NCBI GenBank assembly: GCA_937625935.1
Contig: OW569354.1
Span: 310,001 to 374,000, forward strand
DNA from: Tetramitus jugosus
Lineage: Eukaryota > Protista > Heterolobosea
Reading direction: 5' to 3'
DNA: 64,000 nt
Below the pieces are notes generated by a model. The model was not told the origin of the DNA. It saw only the letters and a list, made by a program, of their open reading frames with translations, and did no database searches. Each line of letters starts with the position of its first letter. Position 1 is the stretch's first letter. This document shows, piece after piece, positions 15,733 to 57,679 of the stretch. The translations under genes were made by a program, and so were the position numbers.

Positions 15733-15889
15733 AAACAAAGACATCTACATTCACTCACTCCAATAATATACACTTACAAAACTCCTCCAACCTTCCTCTC
15801 GTAATCTCCTCTCCCAAATCTGGTACCACCCAGAAAGAAGAATGTACATCCTCTCTTGACTCATACTCCACTCTGCTGACACGTCATTC

Positions 15890-18012: not shown

Positions 18013-18412
18013 AAAGCTCCACCTCCATTTCAAACTCCCTGACAACAGCAGCATTTGTTCAACTGTTGGTGGTCTTTGCTCGAGACGTCTTGAGCAACCT
18101 TGCACAAGGAAAGAGTCAATGGATCAGTGCTCAACCTTGTTGAAAAACAAGGAAAGCTTTTGATCGCTTTTCTGGTTTGGTTGCAACAGACCTGTAGTAG
18201 GAAGAGGACTACAATGAACTGGTCCCAAATTTTGTATATTCACACAATCTCATAAAAAAAAGCGTTAAAAATCTATTTTTCCGTTCACTTTATTCTTACA
18301 AACTTGTTCATCTCCGACTGAAAAAAAAAAGCGACTTCCAAAATCACACAACAACAATCACAATCATCATTCAGAGAGGAGGCGTCTGTTGAACAACTAC
18401 ACAAAAGAAACC

Positions 18413-20029: not shown

Positions 20030-20239
20030 ATAATTCATATCTCTGCAACTTGTAGAATAAACAACATTTCATCATTTCTTCATCTTGAAGGTTCATGCTT
20101 TCATAATCGGACAATTTTAGACAAAATCCGTTACTTTATTTTTCCACCAAAAGAAAAAATTTCTCTCGTCCATAATTCCAAACTCTTTGAAGGAACAACA
20201 CACGGCAGCTGACATCCCTTACACCACAGAGGAAGAGAC

Positions 20240-22594
20240 ATGTCCGTATTTTCAAATAAAAAGACACCCGATTTCCTAAAGGATGCAGGTATGTTCATCA
20301 ATGATCCACCTACCAATGGATATCCATAACAATACCTTATTGTGTCGAGTACCATGTCCAATTGAGTGATCATTGAATATTGACACACGTGCGTTTTTTT
20401 CTTTTTGACTACATTAGAATTGTGTCAAACATTCTTTCAATCTTTTATCAACAAGGAAAATGGTCAAAAGACATACGATAGCTACGTACAAGAGGTGCTT
20501 CAGGAAAAGCGCAGATTGATCGAGGTACATTTGGATGACGTTGCCTCTTTTTTCAACAATTTGGACCTTGTGCAACGAATTGAGAGCAACACAAAAACAT
20601 ATCAAGAAATTTTTTCTGCTTGTGTCGATGAGCTAGTGGAATTGGCGCGAAATGGAGGCACAAACCCGAGTGCCTCTGCTGATCCAGCAATGAACACGAA
20701 TCAGGTTCCTAAAGATCTCATGAGAAAGCATGAAGTGTGTTTCCATGAACGATCCATGAAACAACCTATTCCTCTTCGTCAATTGAAGAGTGAGCACATT
20801 GGTAAGTTGGTGAGTGTGAGAGGTATTGTGACTCGTGTAAGTGATGTGAAGGCCGAGGTTCGTGTTGTTTGTTACATGTGCGACAAGTGCCATGCACAGA
20901 TTTATCAAGAAGTGAACGGAAAGGCCTATACTCCATTGTCCAGATGTCCAAGTCAAATTTGCAAGGCTAACAAGTCGAATGGTATTTTGGAACAAATCAC
21001 CAGAATGTGCAAGTTTGCAAAGTTTCAAGAGATGAGGTTGCAGGAGAAGACTGATGAAGTCCCTCAGGGAAATATTCCTCGAAGCTTGCGTGTTTACATT
21101 TCAGGTGATTTGACACGTCAATGCGGACCAGGTGACTCTGTTACAATTACTGGAACATTTATGCCAGCTCCAATCAATAACCGATTTGGAACAGGATCTG
21201 GAGGCTCTATTGCAACTACATTTGTTCAAGCAATGAAGATTGTGAGACATAAGAAGAGATATGATGATTATTCCGAAGATGGTGCACTATTGGATCAAAT
21301 TAAGAAGGATCAGAAGAAAAAGAACATGTATCAACTCTTGGCGAACAGTCTCGCTCCTGAAATTTATGGACATGACGATGTGAAGAAGGCACTCTTGCTG
21401 ATGCTTGCCGGTGGTGTCACAAAATCTTTAGCAGATGGTATAAGCATTCGTGGTGATATCAACATCTGTCTCATGGGTGATCCTGGTGTTGCCAAGTCTC
21501 AGTTGCTTCGTTTCATTTCTCAACTCTCCCCTCGTGGTATTTATACAACTGGAAAAGGTTCCTCCGGTGTTGGTTTGACTGCTGCTGTCATCAAAGACCC
21601 AGCAACAGGCGAGCTTGTTTTGGAAGGTGGTGCACTTGTTTTGGCAGATAAGGGTGTATGCTGCATTGATGAGTTTGATAAGATGGATGATTACGATAGA
21701 ACAGCTTTGCACGAAGTCATGGAGCAACAGAGCGTTTCTATTGCCAAGGCTGGTATCACCACAACACTGAATGCCCGTGCTTCAGTTCTAGCCGCAGCCA
21801 ATCCAGCATACGGCAGATATAATCCAAGAAAGAGTCCTACCGAGAATATTAATTTGCCACCTGCTTTGCTATCTCGTTTCGATCTCATGTTTTTGTTGTT
21901 GGATAAGCAGAATGATGACTTGGATCTGGCACTGGCCCGTCACATTACCTATGTCCATCAGCACTCAAAAGCTCCAGACGCACCTCAAGAAACTACTGAA
22001 ACCACTGATGAACGGTCATCTCAACAAGGCCTCTTGGACAAGAATTATATTAGAGGATACATCTCATTAGCCAAAACATTCAATCCTGTTATCACGAGGA
22101 GTATTTGTGACTTTGTTACTGAACTCTATGTACAGATGAGACAGAATGATCACAGAGCTGGTGTTTTGGCTGGTAAGGAAGATTTTTCTGACACAAGCAA
22201 GGCCTATACAACACCTCGTGCGCTACTTTCGATACTCCGTCTTGCTCAGGCGTTTGCTCGTCTTCGATTCTCTGATGTTGTCTTACAAGAGGATATCTTG
22301 GAGGCAAAGAGGCTCATGGATTCCTCTCGTTCCTCATTGCTCGATGAAAGTTCCAAGGGACAAGCTCCAGATCCAGTCTCTCAAGTCTTTAGCATTATCA
22401 AGGCACGTCATCAACAGCTATTGTCTCGTGGTGGCGATGATGATGTATTATTGGCAGATGTCACTGGTGAACTCACTGGAAAGGGTCTCATGACCTATTT
22501 GGACAAGTGTTTGGAGGAATACGAAAACCTGAACGTTTGGTCCGTTGTGGTCAACGGTACACAGAAGACTGCCGTCACATTTATTCACCTCTAA
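20240..22594 (+). CDS. MCM7: DNA replication licensing factor MCM7; intron 20289-20417
   Basis: IRGDINICLMGDPGVAKSQLL, IDEFDKM, AAANPAYGRYNP and LLSRFDL motifs. A short first exon MSVFSNKKTPDFLKDA splices in frame. Confidence 0.95.
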
Positions 22595-22658
22595 ATTTCT
22601 TACTTATAAATTAAGCTTTGTATCTTTATTATCTTGAAAGAACAGTTGCATCACATAT

Positions 22659-23207
22659 CTACAGTTTTGATATCAGAATATCACTCTTTGTTCTTTCATC
22701 GGGCGTCAGTGTACCGTACGCAGCATAACCTGAAAGGGAGTCCATTCTCATCGTACTCAACATGAATGATCCAGTACCTTTGGCAATGAATGACTCACCA
22801 CAGTACAGTTCAGCTTCTGCTACGACCAGGTGCCTCGTTGCTGATATGACCTTTCCCTTTGCAATCATTGACAGCCCTTGTCGCTTCATCTCTTCCGAAA
22901 CTGGCTTGAAATAGGAGAGTTGGAATCCAGATGTAAACATGAACGTGTCCTTGTTAATGGACTGCGCAGCGAACCAGGCTGCATCGTCCAGAGCTTTGAA
23001 AATGAAACCACCGTGCATCGTGTTGGCCGCATTGAAAAATTCAGTCTGGATCTCGGTAGCAACAATCGATTGACCATAGTCCGGTACCTGAGCAATGTTA
23101 TGAAAGTATTTGGAGAAGGGAGCAGACTTGTACATGTAAGCCAGACTATTCCAATGATATTGGAACTGTTCATGGTTGGGTGACTTTACAAATGGATGAG
23201 CGTTCAT
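22659..23207 (-). CDS. PaaI-family hot-dog-fold thioesterase
   Basis: FFNAANTMHGGFIFKALDDAAWFAAQS...YFKPV...AKGTGSFM; likely ATG at 23207. Confidence 0.85.
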   Translation of the reverse strand: MNAHPFVKSPNHEQFQYHWNSLAYMYKSAPFSKYFHNIAQVPDYGQSIVATEIQTEFFNAANTMHGGFIFKALDDAAWFAAQSINKDTFMFTSGFQLSYFKPVSEEMKRQGLSMIAKGKVISATRHLVVAEAELYCGESFIAKGTGSFMLSTMRMDSLSGYAAYGTLTPDERTKSDILISKL

Positions 23208-23511
23208 ACTGAGATACGCGTCACTCGTGTTGCCAGAGATGAGTGAAGTGTTGATTTTGTGTGTTTTGTCTAAATGACACGGAGATAAGGAAATATTCTG
23301 TCGCAGGTCCAAAAGACGCGAATGACGAAGAGCGTATGTGTCAAGAGCGAGGTAGTTGTTACCTGTAAGTAACCAACTTTGGCTAGTCTACAAAGCTTCC
23401 AACTCATAGGTCATAGCTGTGAGTGCGCACAAAATCAATTTCATTGTCCGCAAAACGGACGTGTCGCAACATCGAAACACACAAACAGCAAACACAAAAC
23501 AGCAATCAAAA

Positions 23512-24954
23512 ATGATGCATCAAACAACAAACAAAACACTAGCAGATTCAACTCTACACTACGCACTGTGCAATGGTCTCCTCATGATCAACAAACACAC
23601 CAAACAAGTGCAAGCTGTTCCCTGTACACTGTCCTCTCAGGTCAATCTCGTTTCCAGAGAACAATTCAACAAGGTTCAGAGAATACAGCCTGCTTTGAAT
23701 CAATTGGTTCAAGACATTTCAGTCAATAGAGATTTTTTGAGATTGAGCTTGGAGCATGTGATTGAAGAGGATGACTTTACGAAAAAATTGTTTGAGATTT
23801 ATGAGGAACAGCAGTCAGATGAAGCGAGTTATGGGAACAAGGTACAAATGGGTATTCATCGATCGGATTACATGCTTCATTTTGACCAGTCCAACGAGAC
23901 AAACAATGGAGTTTTACAACAAGTGGAATTGAACACAATTTCGAGTGCGTTTGGTGCGTTGAGCACAAAAGCAACATTGATGCATCAAATGCTGGCGAGT
24001 AAACCAGGTGTCAAGGTCGAAGTTTCACCCAGTTTTTACAATAATGTCAAGTGCTTGCATTCGGGTCATCAAGTGTTCAAGAATTTGATTGCAAAGGATG
24101 CTCTATTGTTGGATACTCATCAGGAGAATCATCGAGAACCAGTCATTTTGTTTGTTGTTCAGCCAGATGAGGGCAATTTTGCAGATCAGAGACATTACGA
24201 GTATGAACTGTATAGAGAGTATGGTGTTCGATGCGTGAGAAAGACGTTGACCGAGTTGGCCACAGAAGCAAAGGTCGATGCTCATGGCTTCCTATTTATC
24301 GAAGACAATGTACCAGTCAGTGTTGTGTACTTTAGGTCTGGATATGGACCAGGTGATTATCCAACGGAACAGGAGTGGAATGCGAGAAGATTGTTGGAGT
24401 CGTCCAAGGCAATCAACTGTCCTTCCATTGGATATCAATTGGCAGGAACAAAAAAGGTGCAACAAATCTTGGCCGATCCAAAGAATTTGTCGCAATTCAT
24501 CAAGGATGATTCTCTCGTTCAGGCACTCATGGAAACATTTACAGGTATTTATGCACTGTCGAATCCGGATCATGCAGAGCACATTGCCGATGCAATCAAC
24601 AACCCACAAGACTACGTGTTGAAGCCTCAGAGAGAAGGTGGAGGCAACTTGATTTTTGGAGAAAAGATGGTTGAAATGTTAAAGGACGAGAAGCAGAGCA
24701 AATCGCAGCAATATATTCTAATGAAGCGCATTTGTCCGCGCGGAACCCCTACCGTGTTTTTCAAGGATGGAGTCACTGATGAGTCATTGGGTGTCAGCGA
24801 ACTAGGCATATTTGGTACTTTTGTCGGCAGTGCAAACAAGATTCATCTCAACGAATGCTCAGGTTATTTGCTCCGTACCAAGAAGGAAGGAGTTGAAGAC
24901 GGAGGTGTGGCCAGTGGTGTAGCTGTTCTTGATTCATTGGCTTTCACTGACTAA
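23512..24954 (+). CDS. GSS: Glutathione synthetase (eukaryotic type)
   Basis: GIHRSDYM, QQVELNTIS, VVYFRSGY, LAGTKKVQQ, VLKPQREGGGN, VSELGIFG and GGVASGVAVLDS. Confidence 0.95.
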   Translation: MMHQTTNKTLADSTLHYALCNGLLMINKHTKQVQAVPCTLSSQVNLVSREQFNKVQRIQPALNQLVQDISVNRDFLRLSLEHVIEEDDFTKKLFEIYEEQQSDEASYGNKVQMGIHRSDYMLHFDQSNETNNGVLQQVELNTISSAFGALSTKATLMHQMLASKPGVKVEVSPSFYNNVKCLHSGHQVFKNLIAKDALLLDTHQENHREPVILFVVQPDEGNFADQRHYEYELYREYGVRCVRKTLTELATEAKVDAHGFLFIEDNVPVSVVYFRSGYGPGDYPTEQEWNARRLLESSKAINCPSIGYQLAGTKKVQQILADPKNLSQFIKDDSLVQALMETFTGIYALSNPDHAEHIADAINNPQDYVLKPQREGGGNLIFGEKMVEMLKDEKQSKSQQYILMKRICPRGTPTVFFKDGVTDESLGVSELGIFGTFVGSANKIHLNECSGYLLRTKKEGVEDGGVASGVAVLDSLAFTD

Positions 24955-25121
24955 TCGCTCATATTCAACGACAACAACTTCTGACTTGCAACAGTCAATC
25001 CAAGAATAAAGTCGCCAAACGTTGGGTGCATTTCGCGATTGTGCCTCACCAAAAATTTGATCTCTCAAACAACAACAACAAGAGCAAATAAAAAAACAAC
25101 GATAACAAGAGCAAAAGAAGA

Positions 25122-27515
25122 ATGGGCAAAGCCACTCTTAGCATCCAATCCATTGACTTTACAAAATATTGGCATGCTCTACGCGATGATATGCTAAAGA
25201 TTTTGTTTCATCCATTGTCTGTTGAACATCGACCCAAATACTCTTGGGAACGCCTTCATCAGTTCATTTATCGAATATGCACGGGTCGTTGCTATCATTT
25301 GGGCATTGATGAGCATCAGAGGATTGAGAGTGGAGAGAAACTGACATTTTCATGCCCAGAAAACAACAGTCCACAACCAAAATTGTTGTACTTTGTTGTG
25401 CGAAAATCGATTGAACGGTACATGAGAGATCACTTGTGCAGTTGTTGTGATGATGACGATGCTGATCCTGATGATACTAATGATAGTAGTGATCAAAAGA
25501 CAAAGAGTAGTCAATACACGGGAGTGCACATTGTGCACATGGGAATGGATCTGTTAAAGTTTTATGTGAATCATTGGGATAATTATTCGATTGGTATTGA
25601 TTCGTTGAATGGAATTTTCTTGTACATGACCAGAGATTGGATCATACCGAATCAGACAAAATATGTCGAAGGATCAGCCGATTTGGAGAATGGTGTCTAT
25701 TCGATTCGAGTGTTGGGATACTTGTTGTTTCGACAAGTGTTTTATGAGAAAATTCAGTCCAATCTGCAGAACACGGTACTCGAGTTGATTCATCAGAACA
25801 GAGAGTTGGGCGATCAGTTTGATGAGTATGATTTGTTGGAGCGATATGTGCGATCTGTTTCACGATTGGGATTCGATGGATTAGAGTGGTATGAAGCAGT
25901 GTTTGAGCAACACTTTTTGAAGGAGACCGAAGAGTACTATAAAATCAAGTGTGCGGCTGTTTCCTCAGTTTCCGAATATTTGAATACGATGCTTCACCAC
26001 TTGCGATTGGAAGAGAAGATTTCTGGTCGATACTTGCTATCTTCGACGAAACCAAAGCTCATGTCCATATGTATCAATCACATGATTCACAAGAACTCTG
26101 ATATGTTGTTCGCCGTTTTGCCAGATTGGCTAAAGTATGACAATCGCTCCGATTTAAAGAACTTTTATGCACTGATGAAGCATTCGAATGAGGCAAGCGT
26201 AAAATTGCGAAATTATTTCCATGAACATGTACGGGAGAGTACCGAAGATCGATTAGAGATTGTTAGAAGGGAGAGTCCTGATATATGGAAAAACACTGTT
26301 GATACTTTGATTAATGTTTATCTTCATTTTACTGGATTGATTGAGCAGGTGTTTGATAGGGATACCGAGCTTATATTGGCACGTGATGGAGCACTGAAAT
26401 CTGTCATTTCGCGTACCAAAAACTTTCCTGAATGGTTGGCTAAGAAGATGAATGCCATTTTGCGTGGTAGTGAAAAGTTATTGAACGAAGAAGAGAACGA
26501 AATACAACTGAACACGATATTGAAGCTGTATACGCTTCTCACTTCCGGAGACGCATTCCTAAAATTTTATTCAGTTTATTTTGGCAAAAGACTGATACAA
26601 GGTGTTTATTCTCATGACAACGAAGCAGCCATGTTGGGAAAGTTGAAACAAATATGTTCGTTTGGTGAGGTTTACAAACTGCAGCGAATGTTCAATGATA
26701 TCCACATGTCTGAAGACTTGAATAATCGATTCAATGCCCACATATCGAACATGCAAGCGACGAGTAGCATTGATTTCTCATGTACAATTCTAACACTTGG
26801 TAGTTGGCCATTGTTAGAAACCAATGTCAAATGTATGGTACCCCGGTCATTGGAGCCCATGATGAACCAGTTCGCCGAGTATTACATAAGTCAGCATCAG
26901 GGTAGAAAATTGCAGTGGGTCCCTTCAGTATCCAAAGGTATTGTTCGATCGAATTGCTGGGCCTCCCCCTATGAATTCCAAGTATCATGGTTGCAGCTCT
27001 GTGTGTTGTATCACTTTAACGAAATGGATCAATGTACAGTGGAGGAGTTGCAACGTGTAACAGACATGGACAATACAAGTCTCCATCAAACTTTACACAC
27101 ATTGTATTCAGCAAAGGTTCTCATTATTCAAAGAGAGGGAGTTCCCTTGCTTGACGACAAGAAGTTATTGATTCAATCGAGTGACATTGTATCCCTGAAT
27201 TTTGGCTTCAGTAACAAGCGGCTACGAATCTCACTGTTTGCCCTTGCTACAAAAGGGTTGAGCGATGAAACTCATAGCAAAGTTGTGCAACAGATCGATG
27301 ATGATCGCAAATACGTGATACAAGCAATAATTGTTCGGATCATGAAGTCACGAAAATCGATGAATCATAGAGAACTGGTCGGCATGGTATTATCTCAACT
27401 GCAGCACTTTAGGCCATCCGTCACAGATGTAAAGAAGAATATTGAACATTTGATAGAGATGGATTATTTGGCAAGACATGTCACACACTCTGAAATATAT
27501 AATTACGTTGCATAA
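25122..27515 (+). CDS. Cullin (CUL1/CUL2-like)
   Basis: KLQRMFNDI, ILTLGSWP, GRKLQW and the neddylation motif IQAIIVRIMKSRK...IEHLIEMDYLAR...YNYVA. Confidence 0.92.
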   Translation: MGKATLSIQSIDFTKYWHALRDDMLKILFHPLSVEHRPKYSWERLHQFIYRICTGRCYHLGIDEHQRIESGEKLTFSCPENNSPQPKLLYFVVRKSIERYMRDHLCSCCDDDDADPDDTNDSSDQKTKSSQYTGVHIVHMGMDLLKFYVNHWDNYSIGIDSLNGIFLYMTRDWIIPNQTKYVEGSADLENGVYSIRVLGYLLFRQVFYEKIQSNLQNTVLELIHQNRELGDQFDEYDLLERYVRSVSRLGFDGLEWYEAVFEQHFLKETEEYYKIKCAAVSSVSEYLNTMLHHLRLEEKISGRYLLSSTKPKLMSICINHMIHKNSDMLFAVLPDWLKYDNRSDLKNFYALMKHSNEASVKLRNYFHEHVRESTEDRLEIVRRESPDIWKNTVDTLINVYLHFTGLIEQVFDRDTELILARDGALKSVISRTKNFPEWLAKKMNAILRGSEKLLNEEENEIQLNTILKLYTLLTSGDAFLKFYSVYFGKRLIQGVYSHDNEAAMLGKLKQICSFGEVYKLQRMFNDIHMSEDLNNRFNAHISNMQATSSIDFSCTILTLGSWPLLETNVKCMVPRSLEPMMNQFAEYYISQHQGRKLQWVPSVSKGIVRSNCWASPYEFQVSWLQLCVLYHFNEMDQCTVEELQRVTDMDNTSLHQTLHTLYSAKVLIIQREGVPLLDDKKLLIQSSDIVSLNFGFSNKRLRISLFALATKGLSDETHSKVVQQIDDDRKYVIQAIIVRIMKSRKSMNHRELVGMVLSQLQHFRPSVTDVKKNIEHLIEMDYLARHVTHSEIYNYVA

Positions 27516-48876: not shown

Positions 48877-51822
48877 TCAGCTGTCCAGTTCAAAGTGAAT
48901 AAATTTTGTCATCTGAACCGAGATCTCCGAGTAGAGAACTGTTGGGTAGATATTTTCAAAGTCGACGTAAACTTCACCATTTTCCAAACTTACGGTAAAA
49001 CCGAGCAGCTTCGAATAGGACAGCACCCGCTGCACAGAGTCGATATTTTGTAATAAACTGGCACCAAGTCGCATATGGCCACGTGAGGGCACGTGTAACC
49101 TGGTGAGTGCCTCTCCTGATCGCCGGCCGACTTCTAAGCTGACAAAGATGAGAAGTGAGGGCAACCAAGAGAACGAATGGACATCATTATTGCCGTTAAA
49201 AACCTCTTTCTCGAGACCTCTTTCCAATCCCTTATAAATCGTGTAGTTTGATATAAAAACACCATCATTAGTCTTCAATGATGGATCAAGATCTGAAATA
49301 AAGCTCAAGAAACCTTCATAGAAAGCCAAGATATGAGAAACAGGCGACAGTTGGACATCAGGTGCCTTCCAATCGTTCATGTACTTAAATTGTGCGTTAT
49401 GATTTCGAATATTCGCCTTGATAAATAGATAGGACAAAACAGGTGCTGTATCATCAGCTCCGGCTCTCCATTCATCATCCTTTGTGTCCTCTTCTGCACT
49501 GCTTCTTCCCTGGATTTCTCGCTTCTTTTTCCTATTGTTTGACCGATTCTGCTTCACTTCAACGAGCACTCGATCTCTGAACACAGCTAACATGTCAATT
49601 TTCTTCGAAAATGTTTTGGCTTTGCTCATATCCTCCAGTAACCGCACTGAGCTCTCAAAGGGCTTCTCAGTCACATCCAGTGGTAAGAACTCCTTGTTTA
49701 CTCCTAGGTGTTCTGGCGTACAAAAATCTAGACTCTCGAGCTTGTGATTCAACAGCAAGTCCTTTTCCTGATACGTCTTTTCATACAGAGAAAACAATGT
49801 GTCACCAAATTTCAAGTGTACATAGGCAGGAATGAGTGGCTCATACTCCTCTTGACACATATTCCTAATATCAACGATCTGTTCTTCAAACATAAATGAC
49901 TCCGTTCCTGGATCGTCCTTCTTTGACCGAGAAACTACGGTGGCTCGTCTGGATCGCTTCTCTGCATTCATGGAACGATCAGACAATACCATGAAAGCAG
50001 CATCAAAGTACGACCACACTTCCTCTTTGATAAAAGCAATGAAGGACTGAATATCTTCAATCGCATAGTACAACATCACTGATTTTTGATTTCCTCTCCT
50101 CTTAGCAGCAGAATGATAACTGCCCTGGAAAGATGATTGGAAAAAATCAAACGCGTTACCAATGTACGAATTCTCGGCTCGATTCGACAATATTTTGTGA
50201 ACCAATTCATCAAATTGACTATTATCAGATAAACTCTTGCACAGAATCTCCATGTGAGAATTCAATTCATCCCTTCTCAGGTATTCATTAACAATTCTGA
50301 ATTGCTTCCATTTGAGAGCATACGATAATTTTGGGCCATTGTCTTCATCGCGTCGAATTCCATATTGTTCAATCGACTTTGATGCCACACCATTTGCAAT
50401 TTGCTCCTTGAGTGCCGATGATGACTCACATTTGATTTGAAACAGTGCTGTTGCAAAGCAATTTTTGACACTTCCCTTTGTAAATGTTCCCTTCTCTACA
50501 TCTGTTCCGTGCCACCTACCATACATGGCATCACCATTTGGCCAATACATGGTTCCCTTGCCTTTTCTCTCACCCTTGGAAAACTTTCCTTCATAGATGG
50601 CACCATCACTATAAATGTAGACACCATGACCGTGAAACAAACCATCTTTCCATCCTCCAAAATACCGGTTCATATTGGAAAACACTTGCACTCCATAACC
50701 GTGCTTCTTATTCGCTAAAAACCCTCCAAAATAAGTGTCTCTCGAGTACAATTCACCTTCTCTGCACATATGAAAATCATTCCAATCCAACAAGACAATA
50801 TCGGCTCTCGGTCTCAACTCTATATAACCCCAATAGTTCCAATTCTTGCCCATTGACACCTTGAACCTCGTTTGTGCATTCGGTTTATCATCCATCCACT
50901 CACCAATCACCATCCATGATTGATTATTGTTGTTACGACTATTATAAATCAACTTTCCGAAGCCATGTCTCTTTCCATGCTCAAAATCACCATCATACAC
51001 AGTACCATTCGGATAAATCAATGATCCCGATCCATGAGGCACCTCCAAGAAATTACCCAACTGATTCAACAGAGAACCCGTGTAGGTGTACTCTCCCTTG
51101 TCTCGAATCGTATATGTTACAGTCTTTAAATCTCCGGGTAGGATAGGCGGAGAATAACAATCCATGGAAGAAGAAGCTTCACTGTAGGATGTCATATTCT
51201 CAGATTCAGTCTCATTTTTGGTCGCATCATTCGCTTGTTGCTGTTGCTGTTGATTGTTCTTATTTTTGTGAACGAGCGCTCGTAAATGATTTTTCTTGCT
51301 AAAAATACTCTTGAGCTTGAATCGATGTGTGGATTTGGATGTCGTCGATGTCGATGTGTTATTGTTGGTGGTGGTGGTGGTAGTGGCAGTAGTAGCAGTA
51401 GTGACAGTGTTTGTAAAAGTGGTGGTTGCTGTTTCTGCTGATAGTATATCGTTTGATGTGTGATCATTTTCATTGTTGATCATGATGGTTTGGTTGTCAT
51501 TGTCATTCTCTTCACTATCATCACTGTTCCCATTGACTCTGGGTGATGGTGAATCACTATTGTTATTGTTATTGTTGTTGTTGTTGTCGTTGTTGGGAGA
51601 CTGATCATCATCATCATCATGGTTGTCGTCAATATTGGTTAATGGAGTTGTAGAGGTCGTTGAAGAGACAATGGCAGCATCTGTCGTTGAACCACCACCA
51701 CTATTCACTACATTGGCCGTAGTACCGGTCGTGCTTGTTGCTGTTGTTGTTGTTGGAGTGGTGGTGTTGTTGTGATTTGACGACGTCGAGTTTTTGGGAG
51801 TCGTTTTGGAGAATAGTCCCAT
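48877..51822 (-). CDS. MORN-repeat plus VPS9-domain protein (alsin-like Rab5 GEF)
   Basis: MORN repeats (YDGDFEHGKRHGFG, YFGGWKDGLFHGHG, YEGKFSKGERKGKG) and VPS9 motif GADDTAPVLSYLFIKA. First ATG (MGLFSK) is at 51822. Confidence 0.85.
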   Translation of the reverse strand: MGLFSKTTPKNSTSSNHNNTTTPTTTTATSTTGTTANVVNSGGGSTTDAAIVSSTTSTTPLTNIDDNHDDDDDQSPNNDNNNNNNNNNSDSPSPRVNGNSDDSEENDNDNQTIMINNENDHTSNDILSAETATTTFTNTVTTATTATTTTTTNNNTSTSTTSKSTHRFKLKSIFSKKNHLRALVHKNKNNQQQQQQANDATKNETESENMTSYSEASSSMDCYSPPILPGDLKTVTYTIRDKGEYTYTGSLLNQLGNFLEVPHGSGSLIYPNGTVYDGDFEHGKRHGFGKLIYNSRNNNNQSWMVIGEWMDDKPNAQTRFKVSMGKNWNYWGYIELRPRADIVLLDWNDFHMCREGELYSRDTYFGGFLANKKHGYGVQVFSNMNRYFGGWKDGLFHGHGVYIYSDGAIYEGKFSKGERKGKGTMYWPNGDAMYGRWHGTDVEKGTFTKGSVKNCFATALFQIKCESSSALKEQIANGVASKSIEQYGIRRDEDNGPKLSYALKWKQFRIVNEYLRRDELNSHMEILCKSLSDNSQFDELVHKILSNRAENSYIGNAFDFFQSSFQGSYHSAAKRRGNQKSVMLYYAIEDIQSFIAFIKEEVWSYFDAAFMVLSDRSMNAEKRSRRATVVSRSKKDDPGTESFMFEEQIVDIRNMCQEEYEPLIPAYVHLKFGDTLFSLYEKTYQEKDLLLNHKLESLDFCTPEHLGVNKEFLPLDVTEKPFESSVRLLEDMSKAKTFSKKIDMLAVFRDRVLVEVKQNRSNNRKKKREIQGRSSAEEDTKDDEWRAGADDTAPVLSYLFIKANIRNHNAQFKYMNDWKAPDVQLSPVSHILAFYEGFLSFISDLDPSLKTNDGVFISNYTIYKGLERGLEKEVFNGNNDVHSFSWLPSLLIFVSLEVGRRSGEALTRLHVPSRGHMRLGASLLQNIDSVQRVLSYSKLLGFTVSLENGEVYVDFENIYPTVLYSEISVQMTKFIHFELDS

Positions 51823-51988
51823 TTCTTTAAGTAATAGAACAAAGCTGTGATTGAGGGTTGTTGGGAGTGATGATGTTTGGGTTGTTGGTCGTACGAATGT
51901 CGCTATCTTATTTTGGTCTTGGAAGAAGGGAGCACAACGGTGTTTTTGACATGTGTCAAACGAAGCAAAAACTGCCTGCCTCCCGTGC

Positions 51989-51994: not shown

Positions 51995-51996
51995 GT

Positions 51997-52069
51997 TCCT
52001 CCGAGCGTGACTCGAACACGCGACCACAAGATCTACAGTCTCATGCTCTACCATCTGAGCTATCAGAGG
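51997..52069 (-). tRNA. tRNA-Tyr (GTA), intronless
   Basis: The reverse complement CCTCTGA TA GCTC AGATGGTA GAGC A TGAGA CTGTAGA TCTTG TGGTC GCGTG TTCGAGT CACGC TCGGAGG A folds as a 73-nt cloverleaf with a C1-G72 pair and A73. A T6 terminator follows. Confidence 0.97.
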
Positions 52070-52113
52070 AGATGTTAACTGTCCGTTTTTTTATTTTATA
52101 TTCAAAGACATTC

Positions 52114-53442
52114 AAAAAAAACGCAGAAAAAAACGGAATCACATGTCTGGTGATTCAACAAATTTGGTGAAGGAATACGGCAACAGCCGTTATGCAGTGT
52201 GGACCACTGCACGGAAAGGCTCTAGGCCAAGCGACAGAGAGGTGGTCATTACTGGCAACGGTAATGGTGTCTCTCAGTCAGCTTTGGCAAGAAAGATAGG
52301 AGAGGAGTTTGGTGACTGGCTCAACCGAGTCCAGGTCATCAAGAGGAAAGGCCAGCAACGCTTTGTTGCATGGGTGACGGTCAAGGGTGACCGCATCTAT
52401 GACTTTGTTGACTTGTTCAACAAAGAGAGGAGGATTGGCAACAGCACTGCTGCACCCAAGCGCAGTGTTGATTGCACAAGAAAGGTGGTCGTCCATGGCA
52501 TGAAGAACATGTCAGTGGACGACATCAAGAAGCTACTGGGACCTGAGAAGGTTGCCAGTGTGCTCAAGAAGCGCGACACTGCTTTCGTGGTCATGGGTGA
52601 TGAAACCTATGCACGGGCAGTGCTCAGTGGAGAGAACAAGGTCAAGGCCACGGTCACTCGATACGTCGAGAGACCACATGATCCTCTCAAGGCTGTCAAC
52701 AAGAGGTTGACGAAGATGTACGAGGAGCTGCTGACGGTGGTTGACGCACTGCGTCGACAGGTCACAGAACTCACCAAGGAATTGGGAAAGACAAAGGGTC
52801 AAGGGGGCAACAAACCGGTTCCAATGCCGGAACAAGAAGTTGCCCAAGCCACTGCTAGGATGGAGACTACTCCTGAGCTAGTGGAGGCAGAAGAACAGAG
52901 GACTGTAGCAACACCACTGCCATCAGTGCCTGTTGTACAGCTCAGTGCTGAGAACCGGCAAATTCTGGAGCAAGTGAATGCCACTTCTCCAGTGTTCGCC
53001 AAAGTGAAAAAGGAAATTGCTGCATTGGCACTTGCTGCTGCACGCAAAAGGTATGGTTTGACTGAGGACGAACCAGTCATTGTGGATGTGGATGACGACT
53101 CCGAAAGGGAGATTCAGAGCCCACAACTCAATGACAACAAGAAGAGGAGTGCTAGGATCACACTGGGTGATCTGATGAGCAACAAGGCCCAAAACAAGAA
53201 AACAACAACAGATGGCTCTGTGTCCATCGACGGTCCTACTACAAGGTTACGCTCTTTGATGAAGGGCATCAACCAAACCACTCACCAGAGTGATTCTTCC
53301 AACCTGTAGGTGCACCGTCGGGGACAACAAGAGAAGAAGAGTGAATGACGCCCTACGGGTCGTCACTCACAAAACAAGTCAATAAATGAGCAATCGTGTG
53401 CTTGCTGCGCAAGCACACATGGTTGTATGGAACAAAAAAAAA
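52114..53442 (+). mobile_element. Element E1: ORF1-only non-autonomous retroelement, 44 bp upstream of tRNA-Tyr
   Basis: Direct repeat ATATTCAAAGACATTC at 52098-52113 and 53443-53458; A-tail 53434-53443; one 388-aa ORF; 3' hairpins and AATAAA. Confidence 0.9.
52143..53309 (+). CDS. ORF1-like protein of E1: two RRM-like folds, coiled coil and low-complexity C-terminus
   Basis: KVVVHGMKNMSVDDIKKLLG...DTAFVVMGDETYARAVL is RRM-like; heptads LTKMYEELLTVVDALRRQVTEL; paralogous to 53481-54725. Confidence 0.8.
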   Translation: MSGDSTNLVKEYGNSRYAVWTTARKGSRPSDREVVITGNGNGVSQSALARKIGEEFGDWLNRVQVIKRKGQQRFVAWVTVKGDRIYDFVDLFNKERRIGNSTAAPKRSVDCTRKVVVHGMKNMSVDDIKKLLGPEKVASVLKKRDTAFVVMGDETYARAVLSGENKVKATVTRYVERPHDPLKAVNKRLTKMYEELLTVVDALRRQVTELTKELGKTKGQGGNKPVPMPEQEVAQATARMETTPELVEAEEQRTVATPLPSVPVVQLSAENRQILEQVNATSPVFAKVKKEIAALALAAARKRYGLTEDEPVIVDVDDDSEREIQSPQLNDNKKRSARITLGDLMSNKAQNKKTTTDGSVSIDGPTTRLRSLMKGINQTTHQSDSSNL

Positions 53443-53468
53443 ATATTCAAAGACATTCCACCGTAGTG

Positions 53469-54863
53469 TAAAAAACGCCGATGAAAAAACGAACACACAC
53501 CCCTGTTGTTCGTGAGTATGAGAACCCACGCTATGCTGTGTGGACCACAGCACCAAGAGGAACTGCGCCAAGCAGCAAGGAGGTCATCATCACTGGAAAG
53601 TGTGATGACTCTCCCAAGGCTGCCTTGGCCAAGAAGATTGGCTTGGATTTTGGTGATTTGCTCACCAGGGTCCAAGTCATCAAGAAGGGCCCCAAGAGGT
53701 TTGTTGCGTGGGTAACTGTTGTTGATGACAACATTTACCCATTTGTTGAATCCTTCAACCGCAACAAGAAGATGAGTGGCTGCAAGGCAGCACTCAAGCA
53801 CAACGTAGATTGTGCCAAGAAGGTCGTCCTCCACGGTGTCAAAGGTAAGACGGAGGACGACATCAAGGCCATGATTGGCACAACAAAGGTCAAGAACGTG
53901 CTCAAGAAGCACGACACCGCCTTTGTTGTGATGGAGTCCGAAACGTATGCCGAAGCTTTGCTTCGGAACGTTAAATCCATGCCAGTGGAGGTGGAAGCAA
54001 AGCGCTTCCTTCCACGCCCACGTGATCCTGTCAAGGCTGTCAGCAAGAGGCTGACCAAGATGTACCAAGAGCTACTGGCTGTGGTGGACGACCTGCGCCA
54101 CCAAGTCAGTGTGTTAAAAGATATGGCTTCCGTCAACCGGATTCCCCTCGCATCCCCGTCTCCAAGGACGCCGGAGCGAATCTCCGAATTCGAACCTTCG
54201 ACTCCGTCTACGACCGATGATTGGGAGTCGACCATGCCGGAGTCCCATCCCGCCACTCCAACTACGGTCACCCAAGAGCCAACCAACAATACCATTGATG
54301 AGGATGCTCGTAACAGAGCAATCCTCGAGCTAGTATTGAACACCTCCGAGGTGTTCAAGAAAGTCAAGAAAGAGATTGCTGCCCGAGCAATCATGGTGGA
54401 CCGTGCAAGAAGCACAACCACCGAAGAAGATCCAGTTGAGTTGGATCTCAGTAACCCCGACTGTGAGTTACAGAGTCCCCAACTCAACGAACACAAGAAG
54501 CGATCAGCACGTGTCACCGTTGGTGACACTGCTGCCAACAAGATCCCGGCCAGGTTGGCCAGTATCAAGTCAGGTGCTCTCCGTAGGTCCTACCAACTGG
54601 CTAGGACTACGGAGCCATCTGACCTCACCAGTGGTGCTTCAGATGGAAGTGGAGGCCCTCGCAACGAATCCCTGAAGAAGGGATCAAAACAACATTCCAA
54701 GAAGAGAATGAATCCTGTTGCGTAGGCCTGCCACTCCACTGGGCAAGCACCACATCATGTTAGACAATTGAGAGCAGGCAAGCCTGCTCTCACGCAAAAG
54801 AAAAATAAAAGTTCCGCAACGTGGTGCGTGAGCACCATTTGTTGTATTAAAAAAAAAAAAAAA
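53469..54863 (+). mobile_element. Element E2: second ORF1-only retroelement, 54 bp upstream of tRNA-Tyr once E1 is removed
   Basis: Direct repeat ACATTCCACCGTAGTG at 53453-53468 and 54864-54879; A16 tail 54849-54864; one 414-aa ORF. Confidence 0.9.
53481..54725 (+). CDS. ORF1-like protein of E2, paralog of the E1 protein
   Basis: Shared blocks RYAVWTTA, RVQVIK, RFVAWVTV, TAFVVM, KRLTKMY, KVKKEIAA and QSPQLN..KKRSAR. Confidence 0.8.
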   Translation: MKKRTHTPVVREYENPRYAVWTTAPRGTAPSSKEVIITGKCDDSPKAALAKKIGLDFGDLLTRVQVIKKGPKRFVAWVTVVDDNIYPFVESFNRNKKMSGCKAALKHNVDCAKKVVLHGVKGKTEDDIKAMIGTTKVKNVLKKHDTAFVVMESETYAEALLRNVKSMPVEVEAKRFLPRPRDPVKAVSKRLTKMYQELLAVVDDLRHQVSVLKDMASVNRIPLASPSPRTPERISEFEPSTPSTTDDWESTMPESHPATPTTVTQEPTNNTIDEDARNRAILELVLNTSEVFKKVKKEIAARAIMVDRARSTTTEEDPVELDLSNPDCELQSPQLNEHKKRSARVTVGDTAANKIPARLASIKSGALRRSYQLARTTEPSDLTSGASDGSGGPRNESLKKGSKQHSKKRMNPVA

Positions 54864-54879
54864 ACATTCCACCGTAGTG

Positions 54880-55250
54880 AGAAGAGTGGAAGAATGTGAG
54901 AGATGGTGGCTGCAAAAGGCCGTTAGTAGAAGTGTAGCGGACTTTAGCTCCCTCAAAGATCCCCACAGTATAGACAGGCAGCCTGGGTGGTTTCAGATGC
55001 AAGTCCTCAGTGGAACGCTCCATACCGCAGAGGTTGTTAGAGTCCTCTACAACTCAGACAACAATCCCACCAAATGCGTGTGGTGCAGTCAGGAGCCCGA
55101 AAGTGTGCTCCACTGTCTAATTCGGTGCCCAAGAGCGGTTCATGCCAGGAGATGCCTTGCTATGGCGGTTGCAGAAGAAATTAATGGGATGGGTGTGTTG
55201 TATCAAAATATGGTTCGACAATGTGAGGGTGAAAGACGGAAAGGTCTGCT
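54880..55250 (+). pseudogene. Element E3: degenerate non-LTR ORF2 C-terminal fragment (zf-RVT-type CCHC region)
   Basis: ADFSSLKDPHSIDRQPGWFQMQVLSGTLHT...CVWCSQEPESVLHCLIRCPRA, then a frameshift to IWFDNVRVKDGK. Homologous to 56602-57143; no tail or TSD seen. Confidence 0.8.
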
Positions 55251-55419
55251 CTCCAAAATGCGAAACTACATCGTTCGCAGCAACCGAAATGATGGTACTA
55301 AAAAACTTCACCTTCGAGTGGCCGTAATGGCCAGAAAGCAGACAATCATTCAACAAACATATTGCTAGAATACTGGTGTTGTTTAATGGATTTCTAATAG
55401 TGCTCGCCTTATTCATCCT

Positions 55420-56061
55420 CTATCTCAATCTAGCTTTCTTGGACCTCCTCTCTTCATTCTCCCTTTGTCTTTCTTTTTCTCTTCTCCTTTCATCCAAGAT
55501 ATCTCCTTCATAGTCTGATTGTTGGAATACAGAACATAACAGACAATCAAATCTGGAAGATCTCGCACAACAATTGTTTAAGTAAGGAAAGATTTGATGC
55601 TGAACAACAGACATGGGAATGTTCAACTTTTTGTTCAACACATAGGTGGCGTGCTTCTTTCTATACTCGTGGTCATCAGGCACAGTGGGATCCACTTCAA
55701 TCAACCTATTGTCCCTGCCTCGATCCCTATAACAATCAAAACACAAAAACTCATCAGCGACGAGTTTGACATTGCCCCAATCTTCAAAGAAATCAGAGAA
55801 CTCTGCAGAATAGACTGTATGGCCAGTTCGTGACACATCAGCAAACGCAGAACCGTATTGGCACTTCAGAATGATATACTTTCCACTTCTGGACACAACT
55901 TCTCTGGAATAGCAAAACTGGCCACCTTCACAATGGACATGGTTGGCTTCACTATCGACTTCCTTCACCTTCTTGCCCTTGTTCTGTTTTTCGTACTGTC
56001 TGCGGATTGCACATTGTGATTCAGCACCACCACACTCTCGACAACGAAATGGAATACCCAT
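55420..56061 (-). CDS. Cys-rich orphan protein with CxxC pairs and basic C-terminus
   Basis: About 213 aa from ATG 56061; CREC, CFDC and CLLC motifs; ends RRSKKARLR. Confidence 0.55.
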   Translation of the reverse strand: MGIPFRCRECGGAESQCAIRRQYEKQNKGKKVKEVDSEANHVHCEGGQFCYSREVVSRSGKYIILKCQYGSAFADVSRTGHTVYSAEFSDFFEDWGNVKLVADEFLCFDCYRDRGRDNRLIEVDPTVPDDHEYRKKHATYVLNKKLNIPMSVVQHQIFPYLNNCCARSSRFDCLLCSVFQQSDYEGDILDERRREKERQRENEERRSKKARLR

Positions 56062-56431
56062 GGTGATCACTGTTTATTTCTTGGTGTGGATATGAGAAAA
56101 GAGAAAGAACAAAAATTTGGGAACTGCTGCAACCATCCATTGGGCCTTACAATTACATTCAAGTGATAGGAATTATTCTAGGCCTAGTAACTGCCATGCT
56201 ACACTGCGACAATGGTATGTAGTGATCAATCCCTTCCACATTTGACATGCTGCCTAACACATGATTCCCTTCAGCTCCGATTTCTTCACGACACATGGCA
56301 AGAGATCTTCAAAGAGTTCAAAAATGTGTGGATTGTTCAATTCTCACGACTTGCAACAATATTATATTCGATCTGGAACGAACTTTGAAGTGAACGCTCT
56401 CTACGAAATTTTGAACGATCTCTGTGCAAAA

Positions 56432-56550
56432 GCCTACATTACTGAGGGTTCTCGAGTAGTCTCCTATCTCAATACTAACTCAGCCAGATGGTGCTTAACT
56501 TCTCTATTCGAAATGGGAAGAGGTGGTTCCACCATTGTATGAACGTAGAC
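56432..56550 (-). rRNA. 5S ribosomal RNA gene
   Basis: Reverse complement GTCTACGTTCATACAATGGTGGAACCACCTCTTCCCATTTCGAATAGAGAAGTTAAGCACCATCTGGCTGAGTTAGTATTGAGATAGGAGACTACTCGAGAACCCTCAGTAATGTAGGC is 119 nt. It has helix I GTCTAC/GTAGGC, box A-like GAAGTTAAGC, GTTAGTA and box C-like GGAGAC, followed by TTTT (56428-56431). Confidence 0.95.
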
Positions 56551-56601
56551 ATTAGGAGAGTCTAATCTGGATATCTCGACTTTCTCGGTCGTGATGTAGT
56601 T

Positions 56602-57280
56602 GCGGCGCTGACTTCAGCTTTCTGAAGTACCCCCACAAGATTAATAGACAAGTGGAGTGGTTCTATGCTCAAGTGCGTAGCGGGACTCTTCACACAAGAG
56701 AAACAAAACGCTGTCTATACGGCAAGGATGAAGTGATGGAAAGATGTGAGCGATGTCTCAAAGAGCCAGAGACGATACAGCACTGTCTCATACGTTGTCC
56801 AAGGGCCATCATGAGTAGAAGAAGGTTGGCATTGTCAGTAGGTAAAGACCTTGACAAGTTGGGCATTCACCGTAAGCAGCAAATCAATTTATGGTTTGAT
56901 AATGTTGTGTGGAAGGATGGTAAAATTACGGTGAGGGAAACCCGAAAGACGAGCAAGGAGTTTCTCTCAGGTATGATGGGGATGGAAAATGAAGCAGTGG
57001 AACAAGTAACAAAAGGTTTGAGGATGACCGGTGTGAAGAAGGTCACGGCGGAAAAGAAAGCAAAATCGTTCGTGAACAGGGTGAAGAGGAGGTGCGTCGA
57101 CACCCTTCATCGCCTATTCATATCCCACAAGGAAGACACATAACAATGACGCTCGTAGAGCGTCATTGTGAGAAATGAAAAGTAACAGAGGAGATAACGC
57201 TCTTCGAGCGTTATCCAGTGTAAATCATCAGAAAATAAAATCGGAGCAGCCGAAGTGGTTGTATTAAAAAAAAAAAAAAG
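56602..57280 (+). mobile_element. Element E4: 5'-truncated non-LTR retrotransposon copy (ORF2 C-terminus, 3' UTR, poly(A)), 51 bp upstream of 5S rRNA
   Basis: TSD GGTCGTGATGTAGTT at 56587-56601 and 57281-57295; A14 tail 57266-57279. Open frame ADFSFLKYPHKINRQVEWFYAQVRSGTLHT...CERCLKEPETIQHCLIRCP to the stop at 57143 (L1/Tx1-type C-terminal zinc knuckle). Confidence 0.92.
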
Positions 57281-57679
57281 GGTCGTGATGTAGTTCTCTG
57301 GTAAGAAGAGAAGTGAAGCAGAGAAAAAGATAAGGAGTCAATCAAGAGGTCGTGCATCAAGACACTAAACAAGATAAATAATACTCTGTCGCGGAGGAGT
57401 GAAACACATCCTGTTTCGCACTTTTTGATGTCAATTCATGGAACACAGAGTGATTTGGATGAAAAATGGGATCCCACACAACTCAGAACGATGAAGGTAA
57501 TAATCAATAAATTTGTTGCTTTTGATGTTGGAAATGAAGAAACAGGGCAGGCCGTACTGTTCGGCTTTGATTGTTGGACTTCCTCCATCCATGATCTGGT
57601 TCAATTAATCATAGCTCCGGTGTTTCCTTGACAGTTGAAGTGTTCCGACAAAAAAAAAGCAAAACAAAACCAATAGAAC

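Follow-up and report, generated by a model that had tools for sequence, protein, structure and literature searches.

Poly(A)-tailed inserts beside a tRNA-Tyr and a 5S rRNA gene

Within the window, the whole 64-kb stretch of DNA analysed here, positions 51997-57295 contain a tRNA-Tyr gene and a 5S rRNA gene, each faced head-to-head by inserts with poly(A) tails. We identified the following features:

51997-52069, minus strand: tRNA-Tyr(GTA), target of E1, E2 and E3 (Rfam RF00005, 62.2 bits; ARAGORN 51995-52070)
52098-52113: left TSD of E1, ATATTCAAAGACATTC, an exact 16-mer whose sole other copy in the window is at 53443
52114-53442, plus strand: E1, an ORF1-only poly(A) element with at least 55 genomic DNA matches at 92-100% identity
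52114-52142, plus strand: 5′UTR of E1, 29 nt, starting A8CGC
52143-53309, plus strand: ORF1 of E1, 388 aa, with a predicted RRM fold at residues 25-110
53310-53433, plus strand: 3′UTR of E1, with two hairpins and the end GGTTGTATGGAAC, then A10
53443-53458: right TSD of E1, with 6 bp in common with the left TSD of E2
53453-53468: left TSD of E2, ACATTCCACCGTAGTG, an exact repeat with window copies only at 53453 and 54864
53469-54863, plus strand: E2, a second ORF1-only element, with the 3′UTR end TTTGTTGTATT, then A15-16
53481-54725, plus strand: ORF1 of E2, 414 aa, about 47-50% identical to that of E1
54864-54879: right TSD of E2, an exact repeat of ACATTCCACCGTAGTG
54880 to about 55240, plus strand: E3, an old relic, a piece of the ORF2 C-terminus (CCHC zf-RVT region; Pfam zf-RVT, E 0.0019)
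56431-56550, minus strand: 5S rRNA gene, full length, target of E4 (Rfam RF00001, 100.4 bits)
56587-56601: left TSD of E4, GGTCGTGATGTAGTT, starting 36 nt from 5S +1, with window copies only at 56587 and 57281
56602-57280, plus strand: E4, the 5′-truncated tail of an ORF2-bearing element, with at least the last 163 aa of ORF2 including the CCHC finger
Within E4: 3′UTR with two hairpins and the end GTGGTTGTATT, then A14 and one extra G
57281-57295: right TSD of E4, an exact repeat of GGTCGTGATGTAGTT

E1, E2 and E4 each carry a poly(A) tail and lie between exact TSDs of 15-16 bp; a preliminary description of this DNA had called them poly(A)-tailed and TSD-flanked, and its junction distances were reproduced: the first base of E1 (52114) lies 44 nt from the 5′ end of tRNA-Tyr, that of E2 54 nt from it after removal of E1 and one TSD copy, and that of E4 (56602) 51 nt from 5S +1. 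The gene-proximal end of the E1 left TSD, corresponding to the first-strand nick, is 28 nt from the tRNA-Tyr 5′ end. The 3′ ends of E1, E2 and E4 consist of TTGTAT(n) followed by A10, A16 and A14 respectively. The 6-bp overlap of the E1 right TSD with the E2 left TSD identifies E1 as the later insertion, on the gene side of E2. An older relic had also been described at the tRNA-Tyr site and is indeed present; E3 starts directly after the E2 3′ TSD, is 5′-truncated and 3′-deleted, lacks poly(A), and shares 89.6% amino acid identity with an ORF2 elsewhere in the genome (L072; 89% nucleotide identity over query positions 1-349). Copies of the E2 type, at 93-99% identity, were found at L002, L019, L020, L024, L049 and L058. 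Relatives of E4 elsewhere, 92-99% identical, run on into a full ORF2, and the loose read ends at 56602 are the ORF2 continuation of other copies. The other intergenic DNA of the window contains no copies of the family.

Family members face Pol III genes throughout the genome

Of the 30 E1 copies that were fetched, 24 face a tRNA or 5S gene located on the opposite strand some 40-50 bp beyond their 5′ end (binomial P of about 8e-61, allowing for 2,379 Pol III genes in the genome), while a further 5 are stacked behind another family member. As proposed from the window, the family aims for a set distance upstream of its tRNA and 5S targets. The E1 targets comprise 5S genes and tRNA genes of at least 13 anticodon types; an exception in position is the E1 copy at L004, only about 7 bp from tRNA-Thr. 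Viewed from the genes, a family match in opposite orientation lies upstream of at least 14 of 53 nuclear tRNA genes and one in the same orientation upstream of none; among 47 5S genes, at least 10 have one in opposite orientation and 2 have one in the same orientation, these counts being lower bounds taken from subsets of the gene lists with a fraction of the candidates scored. No family match was found near the U6 (2) and SRP RNA (4) genes among the matches listed, where about 1.4 would be expected.

E1 copies of about 1.33 kb number more than 25, each with a TSD of its own, and in all some 40 insertions have distinct TSDs of 11-19 bp with no shared consensus. A fixed target sequence at other sites, which the preliminary description had named as evidence against its view, was not found among these, and its reading of the targeting as positional and orientation-fixed rather than sequence-specific holds for the position, orientation and TSD structure that we observe. 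The hallmarks of target-primed reverse transcription are all present, namely a poly(A) 3′ end, TSDs of variable length and frequent 5′ truncation, with truncated copies of 55-1635 bp. Younger copies nick within the 5′ end of older ones (L050, L053, L058, L029). Since the fetched loci together contain about 40 insertions beside Pol III genes, each with flanking TSDs, misassembly is implausible as the source of the junctions.

Two insertion registers track the 3′ tail

The insertions fall into two discrete registers, about 11 nt apart, a point absent from the preliminary description. In G-tail elements, which end TTGTATGG, the TSD starts 26-30 nt from the tRNA gene (mean 28.6, sd 1.1, n = 20) and 23-24 nt from the 5S gene. 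The corresponding distances for T-tail elements (TTGTATT) are 37-41 nt in 12 of 15 cases at tRNA genes (about 39 nt), the remaining 3 insertions falling outside this register, and 33 and 36 nt at 5S genes. The register of the first-strand nick thus tracks the type of 3′ tail (Fisher p = 1.7e-7). Measured at the 5′ junction, the distance to the tRNA 5′ end is 40-46 nt in the G register and about 53-58 nt in the T register, with the element always on the opposite strand. Between tRNA and 5S genes both registers shift by about 5 nt, which suggests that distance is gauged from the Pol III transcription start. An AT-rich, TATA-like stretch lies just gene-proximal to the G-register nick.

Element structure, coding capacity and relatives

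A full-length copy was found at L041, with ORF1 followed by ORF2 and a full-length 5′ end. The full-length element is about 5 kb and comprises a very short 5′UTR starting A5-8CGC (about 18 nt at L041, and only 12 nt in E2), an ORF1 with a predicted RRM fold and coiled coil, an ORF2 of about 1290 aa with APE, RT and a CCHC finger, and a 3′UTR of about 120 nt containing two hairpins and ending TG(G/T)TTGTAT plus poly(A). APE, RT and zf-RVT occur in one frame at 10 loci (1203-1318 aa); PF03372 and PF00078 share one 1293-aa frame at C34, into which E4 relatives extend, and likewise at other loci, RVT_1 in L063 reaches E 7e-29, and APE and RT occur together in a related protein (P0222). The family belongs to the AP-endonuclease-type non-LTR retrotransposons (LINEs).

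Residues 25-110 of ORF1 are predicted to adopt an RRM fold (pLDDT 72-82), and RRMs make up nearly all of the top 50 matches in a fold search (Z 6.4-8.6). The model supports ORF1 as a nucleic-acid-binding protein with putative RNA binding. Hairpin folds of the 3′UTRs have z-scores of -3.1 to -5.8. E1 and E2 consist of ORF1 and the 3′ end without ORF2 and are not truncated full elements, a point likewise absent from the preliminary description; they are non-autonomous LINE derivatives of the TRE5-A.2 or HAL1 kind. Mammalian HAL1 elements are ORF1-only LINE derivatives and are not known to be targeted, unlike the family described here. ORF1 is intact in 23 E1 copies with a median dN/dS of 0.29, a ratio indicating that the ORF1-only elements are under purifying selection.

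The best outside match of ORF2 reaches E 2.5e-32, with 22-30% identity. One ORF2 sequence searched by itself gave E 1.9e-12 against human L1 ORF2p and a stronger E 2.5e-18 against R2, and a family profile searched against the PDB matches only R2 proteins, and no L1 ORF2p, at E <= 1. The closest large relatives carry RNase H, a domain that was looked for and not detected in the family. The L1/Tx1 affinity originally suggested finds no clear support in these matches. Tx1-clade LINEs (Dewa, Mutsu, Keno) are associated with small-RNA genes, but their insertions lie within the gene, at a set sequence, whereas the present family inserts upstream and has no Tx1-like target sequence or target consensus. 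By sequence, no relatives of ORF1 were detectable beyond five metagenome proteins. The host itself looks heterolobosean, its MCM7 being 60% identical to that of Acrasis kona.

A landmark-based model of targeting

We consider it likely that this LINE family targets sites upstream of Pol III genes by reading distance from the assembled initiation complex; geometry and the analogy with TRE5-A point to TFIIIB as the most probable tether. The ORF1-only E1 and E2 types would presumably be mobilised in trans by the ORF2 protein, through recognition of the common 3′ end. Target-primed reverse transcription places all members a short way upstream of Pol III genes whose promoters are internal (tRNA, 5S), with the element 5′ end always toward the gene, the first nick in the sense strand of the gene at a fixed distance from it, and the second nick 11-19 bp further out. 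Such placement spares the gene together with the AT-rich box close upstream of it, and contact of an element protein with the complex, as in TRE5-A, would set the distance. The outcome is a safe harbour within a genome that is, as previously described, compact and gene-dense.

The endonuclease or ribonucleoprotein might instead recognise DNA directly, as an AT-rich TATA-like box or as the shape of Pol III-upstream DNA, without contacting Pol III factors. In rebuilt empty sites A/T-rich runs (aaaataaaaa, ataaaata, tttataataa) often lie directly gene-proximal to the G-register nick, and the base after the nick is A at 10 of 18 sites. However, such runs are common in the window, which is 59% A+T, yet copies are found almost only at Pol III genes, and several sites, L017 and L028 among them, have no obvious AT box. 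T-register nicks fall some 11 nt farther from the gene, in sequence that is unrelated and in part lies within older elements, and the offsets are unchanged at 5S genes apart from the shift of about 5 nt. Direct recognition is, in our view, an unlikely explanation. Much less probable still is random or weakly biased integration followed by selection that purged all but the harmless copies upstream of Pol III genes. Compact genomes do undergo safe-harbour selection (PMC5006619) and the host genome is gene-dense, but selection cannot yield a nick position with an sd of 1.1 nt, a fixed orientation (24 upstream matches in opposite orientation, 2 in the same) or a pair of registers linked to tail type; the distance distribution already contradicts random integration, and the other intergenic DNA of the window is free of copies. 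Segmental duplication of gene and element units, or assembly collapse at repeats, is scarcely credible in place of repeated independent insertion, for although another tRNA-Tyr locus (L002) has the same order of tRNA-Tyr, E1 and E2 at 99% identity and the junctions are known from assembly sequence rather than reads, the TSDs and flanks at L002 differ from those of the window, at least 13 anticodon types and 5S are involved with a separate TSD for each insertion, and the 26-Mb assembly has only 56 contigs.

Returning to an initiation complex as the landmark, we offer a wider reading with somewhat less than even confidence. The family may have arisen in Discoba independently of the dictyostelid TREs and may read TFIIIB-DNA geometry with the precision of a single helical turn, its two lineages, distinguished by 3′ tail (TTGTATGG or TTGTATT), nicking about 23 and about 34 nt before the Pol III start. 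Successive insertions would therefore stack and leave the promoter intact, and aiming may reside in the ORF1 protein kept by selection in the abundant ORF1-only elements. Being under purifying selection, the ORF1-only elements provide a natural dissection of the protein needed in cis and a clue to the aiming protein. The nick positions, precise to about 1 nt in two registers at both tRNA and dispersed chromosomal 5S genes, would amount to a natural footprint marking the position of TFIIIB in an organism without Pol III biochemistry.

Comparison with other elements targeting Pol III genes

The comparison with Dictyostelium TRE5 made in the preliminary description is apt (PMC5911963, Table 1). 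TRE5 elements insert in opposite orientation upstream of tRNA genes, at 40-54 bp, and of 5S genes, at 37-41 bp, and their ORF1 contacts TFIIIB (PMC5911963). Shared with TRE5-A (and TRE5-B/C) of D. discoideum are head-to-head insertion at about 40-54 bp from tRNA genes, the use of 5S genes at a slightly shorter distance, two ORFs with APE, RT and a zinc finger in ORF2, a structured 3′ end and a compact host genome (PMC5911963). TRE5-A.2, a derivative that retains only ORF1, is mobilised in trans and requires a 3′ hairpin (PMC3159450), paralleling E1 and E2, for which mobilisation in trans is likely. In contrast to TRE5, the present host is heterolobosean-like rather than amoebozoan, ORF1 has no detectable sequence relative other than the metagenome proteins, the 5′UTR of about 12-30 nt lacks the A/B-module architecture (the A-module promoter being about 200 bp), the targeted 5S genes are chromosomal and dispersed rather than on an extrachromosomal rDNA element, and two registers about 11 nt apart are tied to tail type.

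Among other amoebozoans no TRE-like elements have come to light (PMC5006619). Convergent evolution has a precedent in NLTR-B of Polysphondylium pallidum and NLTR-A of D. purpureum. These non-LTR elements are not related to TREs and came independently to occupy sites like those of TRE5, at 39-64 bp upstream of tRNA genes (PMC5006619); in these an RNase H domain replaces the zinc finger, whereas the family here has a CCHC finger. To judge from a literature search, which, in line with the preliminary description, yielded no non-LTR example outside the dictyostelids, position-specific non-LTR integration upstream of Pol III genes has so far been described only in those amoebae. Its occurrence in a heterolobosean-like protist, as a second case unrelated in sequence, would show that the safe-harbour strategy evolves repeatedly in compact genomes, and would provide a new comparison system for how the Pol III initiation complex aims a target-primed reverse transcription machine.

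The family would add a further practical precedent for landmark-directed, gene-sparing insertion. In yeast, Ty3 uses TFIIIB and Ty1 uses Pol III subunits as landmarks, with tRNA and 5S genes as safe harbours (PMC5911963). Ty3 and Ty1 are LTR retrotransposons that use an integrase rather than target-primed reverse transcription, and their positions differ from those observed here, Ty3 inserting 1-4 bp from the start site and Ty1 within a window of about 1 kb.

Inserts upstream of Pol III genes in the window

Four inserts were located in the window, three of them (E1, E2 and E3) upstream of a tRNA-Tyr gene and one (E4) upstream of a 5S rRNA gene.

Pol III genes and inserts in the window, with the position of each copy of the target-site duplication (TSD)
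51997-52069, minus strand: tRNA-Tyr(GTA) gene (ARAGORN and Rfam)
52114-53442, plus strand: E1, 3′ end GGTTGTATGGAAC followed by A10; TSD an exact 16-mer, ATATTCAAAGACATTC, at 52098 and 53443
53469-54863, plus strand: E2, 3′ end TTTGTTGTATT followed by A15-16; TSD ACATTCCACCGTAGTG at 53453 and 54864
54880 to ~55240, plus strand: E3, decayed fragment, tail absent
56431-56550, minus strand: full-length 5S rRNA gene (ARAGORN/Rfam annotation)
56602-57280, upstream of the 5S gene: E4, 3′ end GTGGTTGTATT followed by A14; TSD GGTCGTGATGTAGTT at 56587 and 57281

E1, E2 and E3 all lie head-to-head with the minus-strand tRNA-Tyr gene. The preliminary description had reported poly(A)-tailed, TSD-flanked inserts head-to-head with Pol III genes, and we found the tails and exact TSDs of E1, E2 and E4 as well as recomputing the same 5′-junction distances of 44 nt (E1), 54 nt (E2) and 51 nt (E4). 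None of these TSDs has more than its two flanking copies in the 64-kb window. The right TSD of E1 overlaps the left TSD of E2 by 6 bp and E1 therefore inserted later than E2, on its gene side; the order of arrival at tRNA-Tyr is E3, then E2, then E1, the older relic described at this site being the decayed and tailless E3. The arrangement is real and highly non-random. In short contigs from four read runs, broken at repeats, E1 and E2 have a read depth ~50-100x that of unique flank.

Between the insert cluster of the tRNA gene and that of the 5S gene is an intronless cysteine-rich ORF of 216 amino acids (55420-56070, minus strand); it has no match in Pfam and is spanned by one 693-nt contig of a soil metatranscriptome. 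The adjoining ORF of 1050 amino acids (48877-51826, minus strand) contains long homopolymers of Asn, Thr and Gln, and its open frame extends by chance through the tRNA-Tyr gene.

Genome-wide association with Pol III genes

To test the targeting genome-wide we fetched 72 loci from the same genome, comprising 30 E1 copies, 30 E4-like copies and 12 reverse transcriptase (RT) loci. An opposite-strand gene lies ~40-50 bp from the 5′ end of most E1 copies, a tRNA gene in 21/30 (two of these tRNAs by Rfam alone) and a 5S gene in 3/30, and the targeted tRNA genes represent at least 13 anticodon types. Five further copies (L011, L012, L020, L022 and L029) sit directly behind a family member in the same orientation, while the last is 5′-truncated with no recognisable feature in its flank. 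With 2,379 Pol III genes assumed for the genome, the probability of at least 24 of 30 such placements is ~8e-61; the fixed placement first noticed in the window thus holds for most of the E1 copies fetched, which are not random relative to Pol III genes. One exception is locus L004 (2820-2910), where the E1 5′ end is only ~7 bp from tRNA-Thr as against ~44 typically, whether because the insertion was unusual or because sequence was subsequently deleted.

The association is also seen from the side of the genes, for which 63 of ~1,600 tRNA candidates were scored. Within 7 kb upstream, an opposite-strand family match accompanies at least 14 of the 53 nuclear tRNA genes, with none on the same strand among the matches listed; for 5S genes the figure is at least 10 of 47, with two on the same strand among the matches listed. 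Downstream family matches listed number two for tRNA and three for 5S genes, and none lies near U6 or SRP RNA genes among the matches listed. A protein search of the genome with ORF1 gave 110 matches from 355 candidates. The 5S genes themselves are scattered among numerous contigs; of ~780 candidates at least 47 were scored, which are nearly identical to one another, and some are closely paired (C1:57053/58194, C10:499896/501145).

Two insertion registers

Iterative excision of nested elements through their TSDs gave ~40 insertions with distinct TSDs of 11-19 bp, and the first-strand nick of target-primed reverse transcription (TPRT) was read from the gene-proximal TSD end. Nick positions fall into two registers that are associated with the type of 3′ tail (Fisher p = 1.7e-7).

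Nick positions by tail type
G-tail (3′ end TTGTATGG; E1 and others): 26-30 nt upstream of the tRNA 5′ end (mean 28.6, sd 1.1, n = 20); 23-24 nt upstream of 5S +1
T-tail (3′ end TTGTAT(T/A)A; E2 and E4 types): 37-41 nt from the tRNA in 12/15, with two at 29-31 and one at 18; 33 and 36 nt upstream of 5S +1

The offset from 5S genes is ~5 nt smaller than that from tRNA genes in either register. Whereas transcription of 5S rRNA starts at the 5′ end of the mature molecule, tRNAs carry a short leader, and the shift therefore suggests that the origin of the ruler is the transcription start or initiation complex and not the gene body.

Reconstructed empty sites contain no target consensus in or around the TSDs, which together with the fixed offsets bears out the proposal of positional, not sequence-specific, targeting. 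The sole feature of these sites, a stretch rich in A and T that lies gene-proximal to the G-register nick, could be taken to favour direct recognition of DNA by the element. We consider this unlikely, since at four loci (L050, L053, L058 and L029) newer nicks fall within the 5′ end of a copy that was already in place, as predicted by a distance rule but not by a sequence rule. At L050 (1430-1720, minus strand), for example, the 300 bp upstream of tRNA-Glu contain two nested fragments, a G-tail one of 55 bp and a T-tail one of 207 bp, and the later TSD (TTTTTTTCGTCGC) covers the first bases of the earlier fragment. TSDs containing AAAAAACGC were considered as artefacts and this was rejected, as they are genuine and extend across the 5′ end of an earlier insertion. 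Selection acting on insertions that were themselves random is a still less probable source of the pattern, and its origin by duplication or assembly artefact is scarcely credible.

Element architecture

E1 and E2 each contain a single ORF, of 388 and 414 amino acids respectively with ~47-50 % mutual identity, a very short 5′UTR, a 3′UTR of ~120 nt and no reverse transcriptase. E3 and E4 correspond to the C-terminal part of a large ORF2, with its CCHC zf-RVT motif. Elsewhere in the assembly containing the window (26.35 Mb, 56 contigs), frames of ~1290 amino acids encoding an N-terminal AP-endonuclease and a reverse transcriptase lie upstream of E4-like tails; ORF2 frames of 1203-1318 amino acids are open at ten loci, and ORF2 forms several subfamilies that are 42-100 % identical. 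A complete 5′ end is present at L041 (from 2155), where AAAAACGC is followed by a decayed ORF1 homologous to that of E1, a 50-nt spacer and the start of ORF2. This order identifies the autonomous element as a two-ORF LINE and rules out an autonomous form without ORF1; E1 and E2 are ORF1-only derivatives which were retrotransposed in that form. At L034 no open frame was found upstream of an internally deleted ORF2.

ORF1 is intact in 23/29 E1 copies with a median pairwise dN/dS of 0.29 (244 pairs), and the ORF1-only lineage has thus been selected to encode its protein. Exact-sequence look-up of the E1 ORF1 found no entry on record, comparison with Pfam gave nothing above threshold, and its only five homologues are all metagenomic. 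The ESM Atlas provided a weak RRM lead (score 0.77). The AlphaFold model is confident only at residues 30-100 and in a long helix at 181-217, and a fold search of 48,161 PDB chains with the confident predicted domain returned nearly exclusively RRM matches (Z up to 8.6).

The three 3′UTRs compared have little sequence in common, yet each has two strong hairpins (z-scores -3.1, -3.4 and -5.8) and in all three TG(G/T)TTGTAT precedes the poly(A). Hairpins and terminal motif plausibly form a recognition element for the reverse transcriptase. In one soil metatranscriptome the E1 and E2 ORF1s are covered by contigs while the E3 relic and tRNA flank are uncovered, which hints that these ORFs are transcribed; relative to host genes, the depth of the elements is much lower there than in DNA runs.

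Relationship to other retrotransposons

The L1/Tx1 label initially given to the family found no support. In the PDB, R2 proteins are better matches for a single ORF2 than is human L1 ORF2p, and at E ≤ 1 a nine-sequence family profile finds R2 proteins alone. Outside the family, the closest long relatives in a full HMMER scan of 1.84 billion proteins either carry RNase H, which was not found in the targeted family, or are uncharacterised arthropod proteins; a search of representatives, cluster names and Pfam on the relatives likewise named only the latter. The likeness of these TRE5-like, Pol III-directed elements to dictyostelid TREs may reflect homology or convergence. A second, unrelated LINE is present at L061 (C1:201002-204787), with an ORF2 frame of ~1332 amino acids containing APE, RT and RNase H, whose identity to the targeted family is only 19-22 %; the flank fetched shows no tRNA gene.

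Mechanism of targeting

These LINEs insert with the hallmarks of TPRT, in strict orientation, at fixed nick positions and without a target motif. Their targets include type 1 (5S) and type 2 (tRNA) Pol III genes, and insertion leaves both the gene and its proximal upstream region intact. The initiation complex of Pol III, and within it most probably TFIIIB, may be the docking site for an element protein; TFIIIB is favoured because its position with respect to the start site is common to tRNA and 5S promoters. The ORF2 protein would bind the terminal hairpin and TTGTAT motif, thereby mobilising ORF1-only RNAs in trans. Docking and trans mobilisation are both directly precedented in Dictyostelium TRE5-A, whose ORF1 contacts TFIIIB, whose C-module hairpin is essential and whose ORF1-only derivative TRE5-A.2 (structure AB-ORF1-BC) is mobilised in trans (PMC5911963, PMC3159450).

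The family comprises TRE5-like, Pol III-directed LINEs and ORF1-only satellites with two base-pair-precise insertion registers. While this kind of system is known, the lineage, sequence family and register structure are new, no such Pol III-directed LINE family having been described before in the host lineage. A 2016 survey of dictyostelids found no TRE-like elements in Physarum, Acanthamoeba or Protostelium (PMC5006619), and a 2018 review lists tRNA-targeted non-LTR elements as dictyostelid only (PMC5911963, Table 1). Our search for literature on retrotransposons and tRNA in Naegleria and Heterolobosea yielded nothing relevant, and tRNA is nowhere mentioned in a 2026 preprint on heterolobosean transposable elements; like the preliminary description, we know of no account outside dictyostelids.

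Host genome

The MCM7 encoded in the window shares 60 % identity with its Acrasis kona (Heterolobosea) counterpart but only 44-47 % with fungal and amoebozoan proteins among named hits. Groundwater, soil, rhizosphere and freshwater metagenomes contain near-identical DNA. Long unbroken host ORFs at 12294-27512 of the window, encoding the second-largest subunit of RNA polymerase I, Fip1, MCM7, glutathione synthase and a cullin, indicate an intron-poor genome that is gene-dense, as had been supposed. Two contigs, C54 and C56, have tRNA matches with identical coordinates and scores (941, 12773, 14364, 14438 and 44585). The two appear to be copies of a single molecule, at least 45 kb in length, which is probably the mitochondrial genome.
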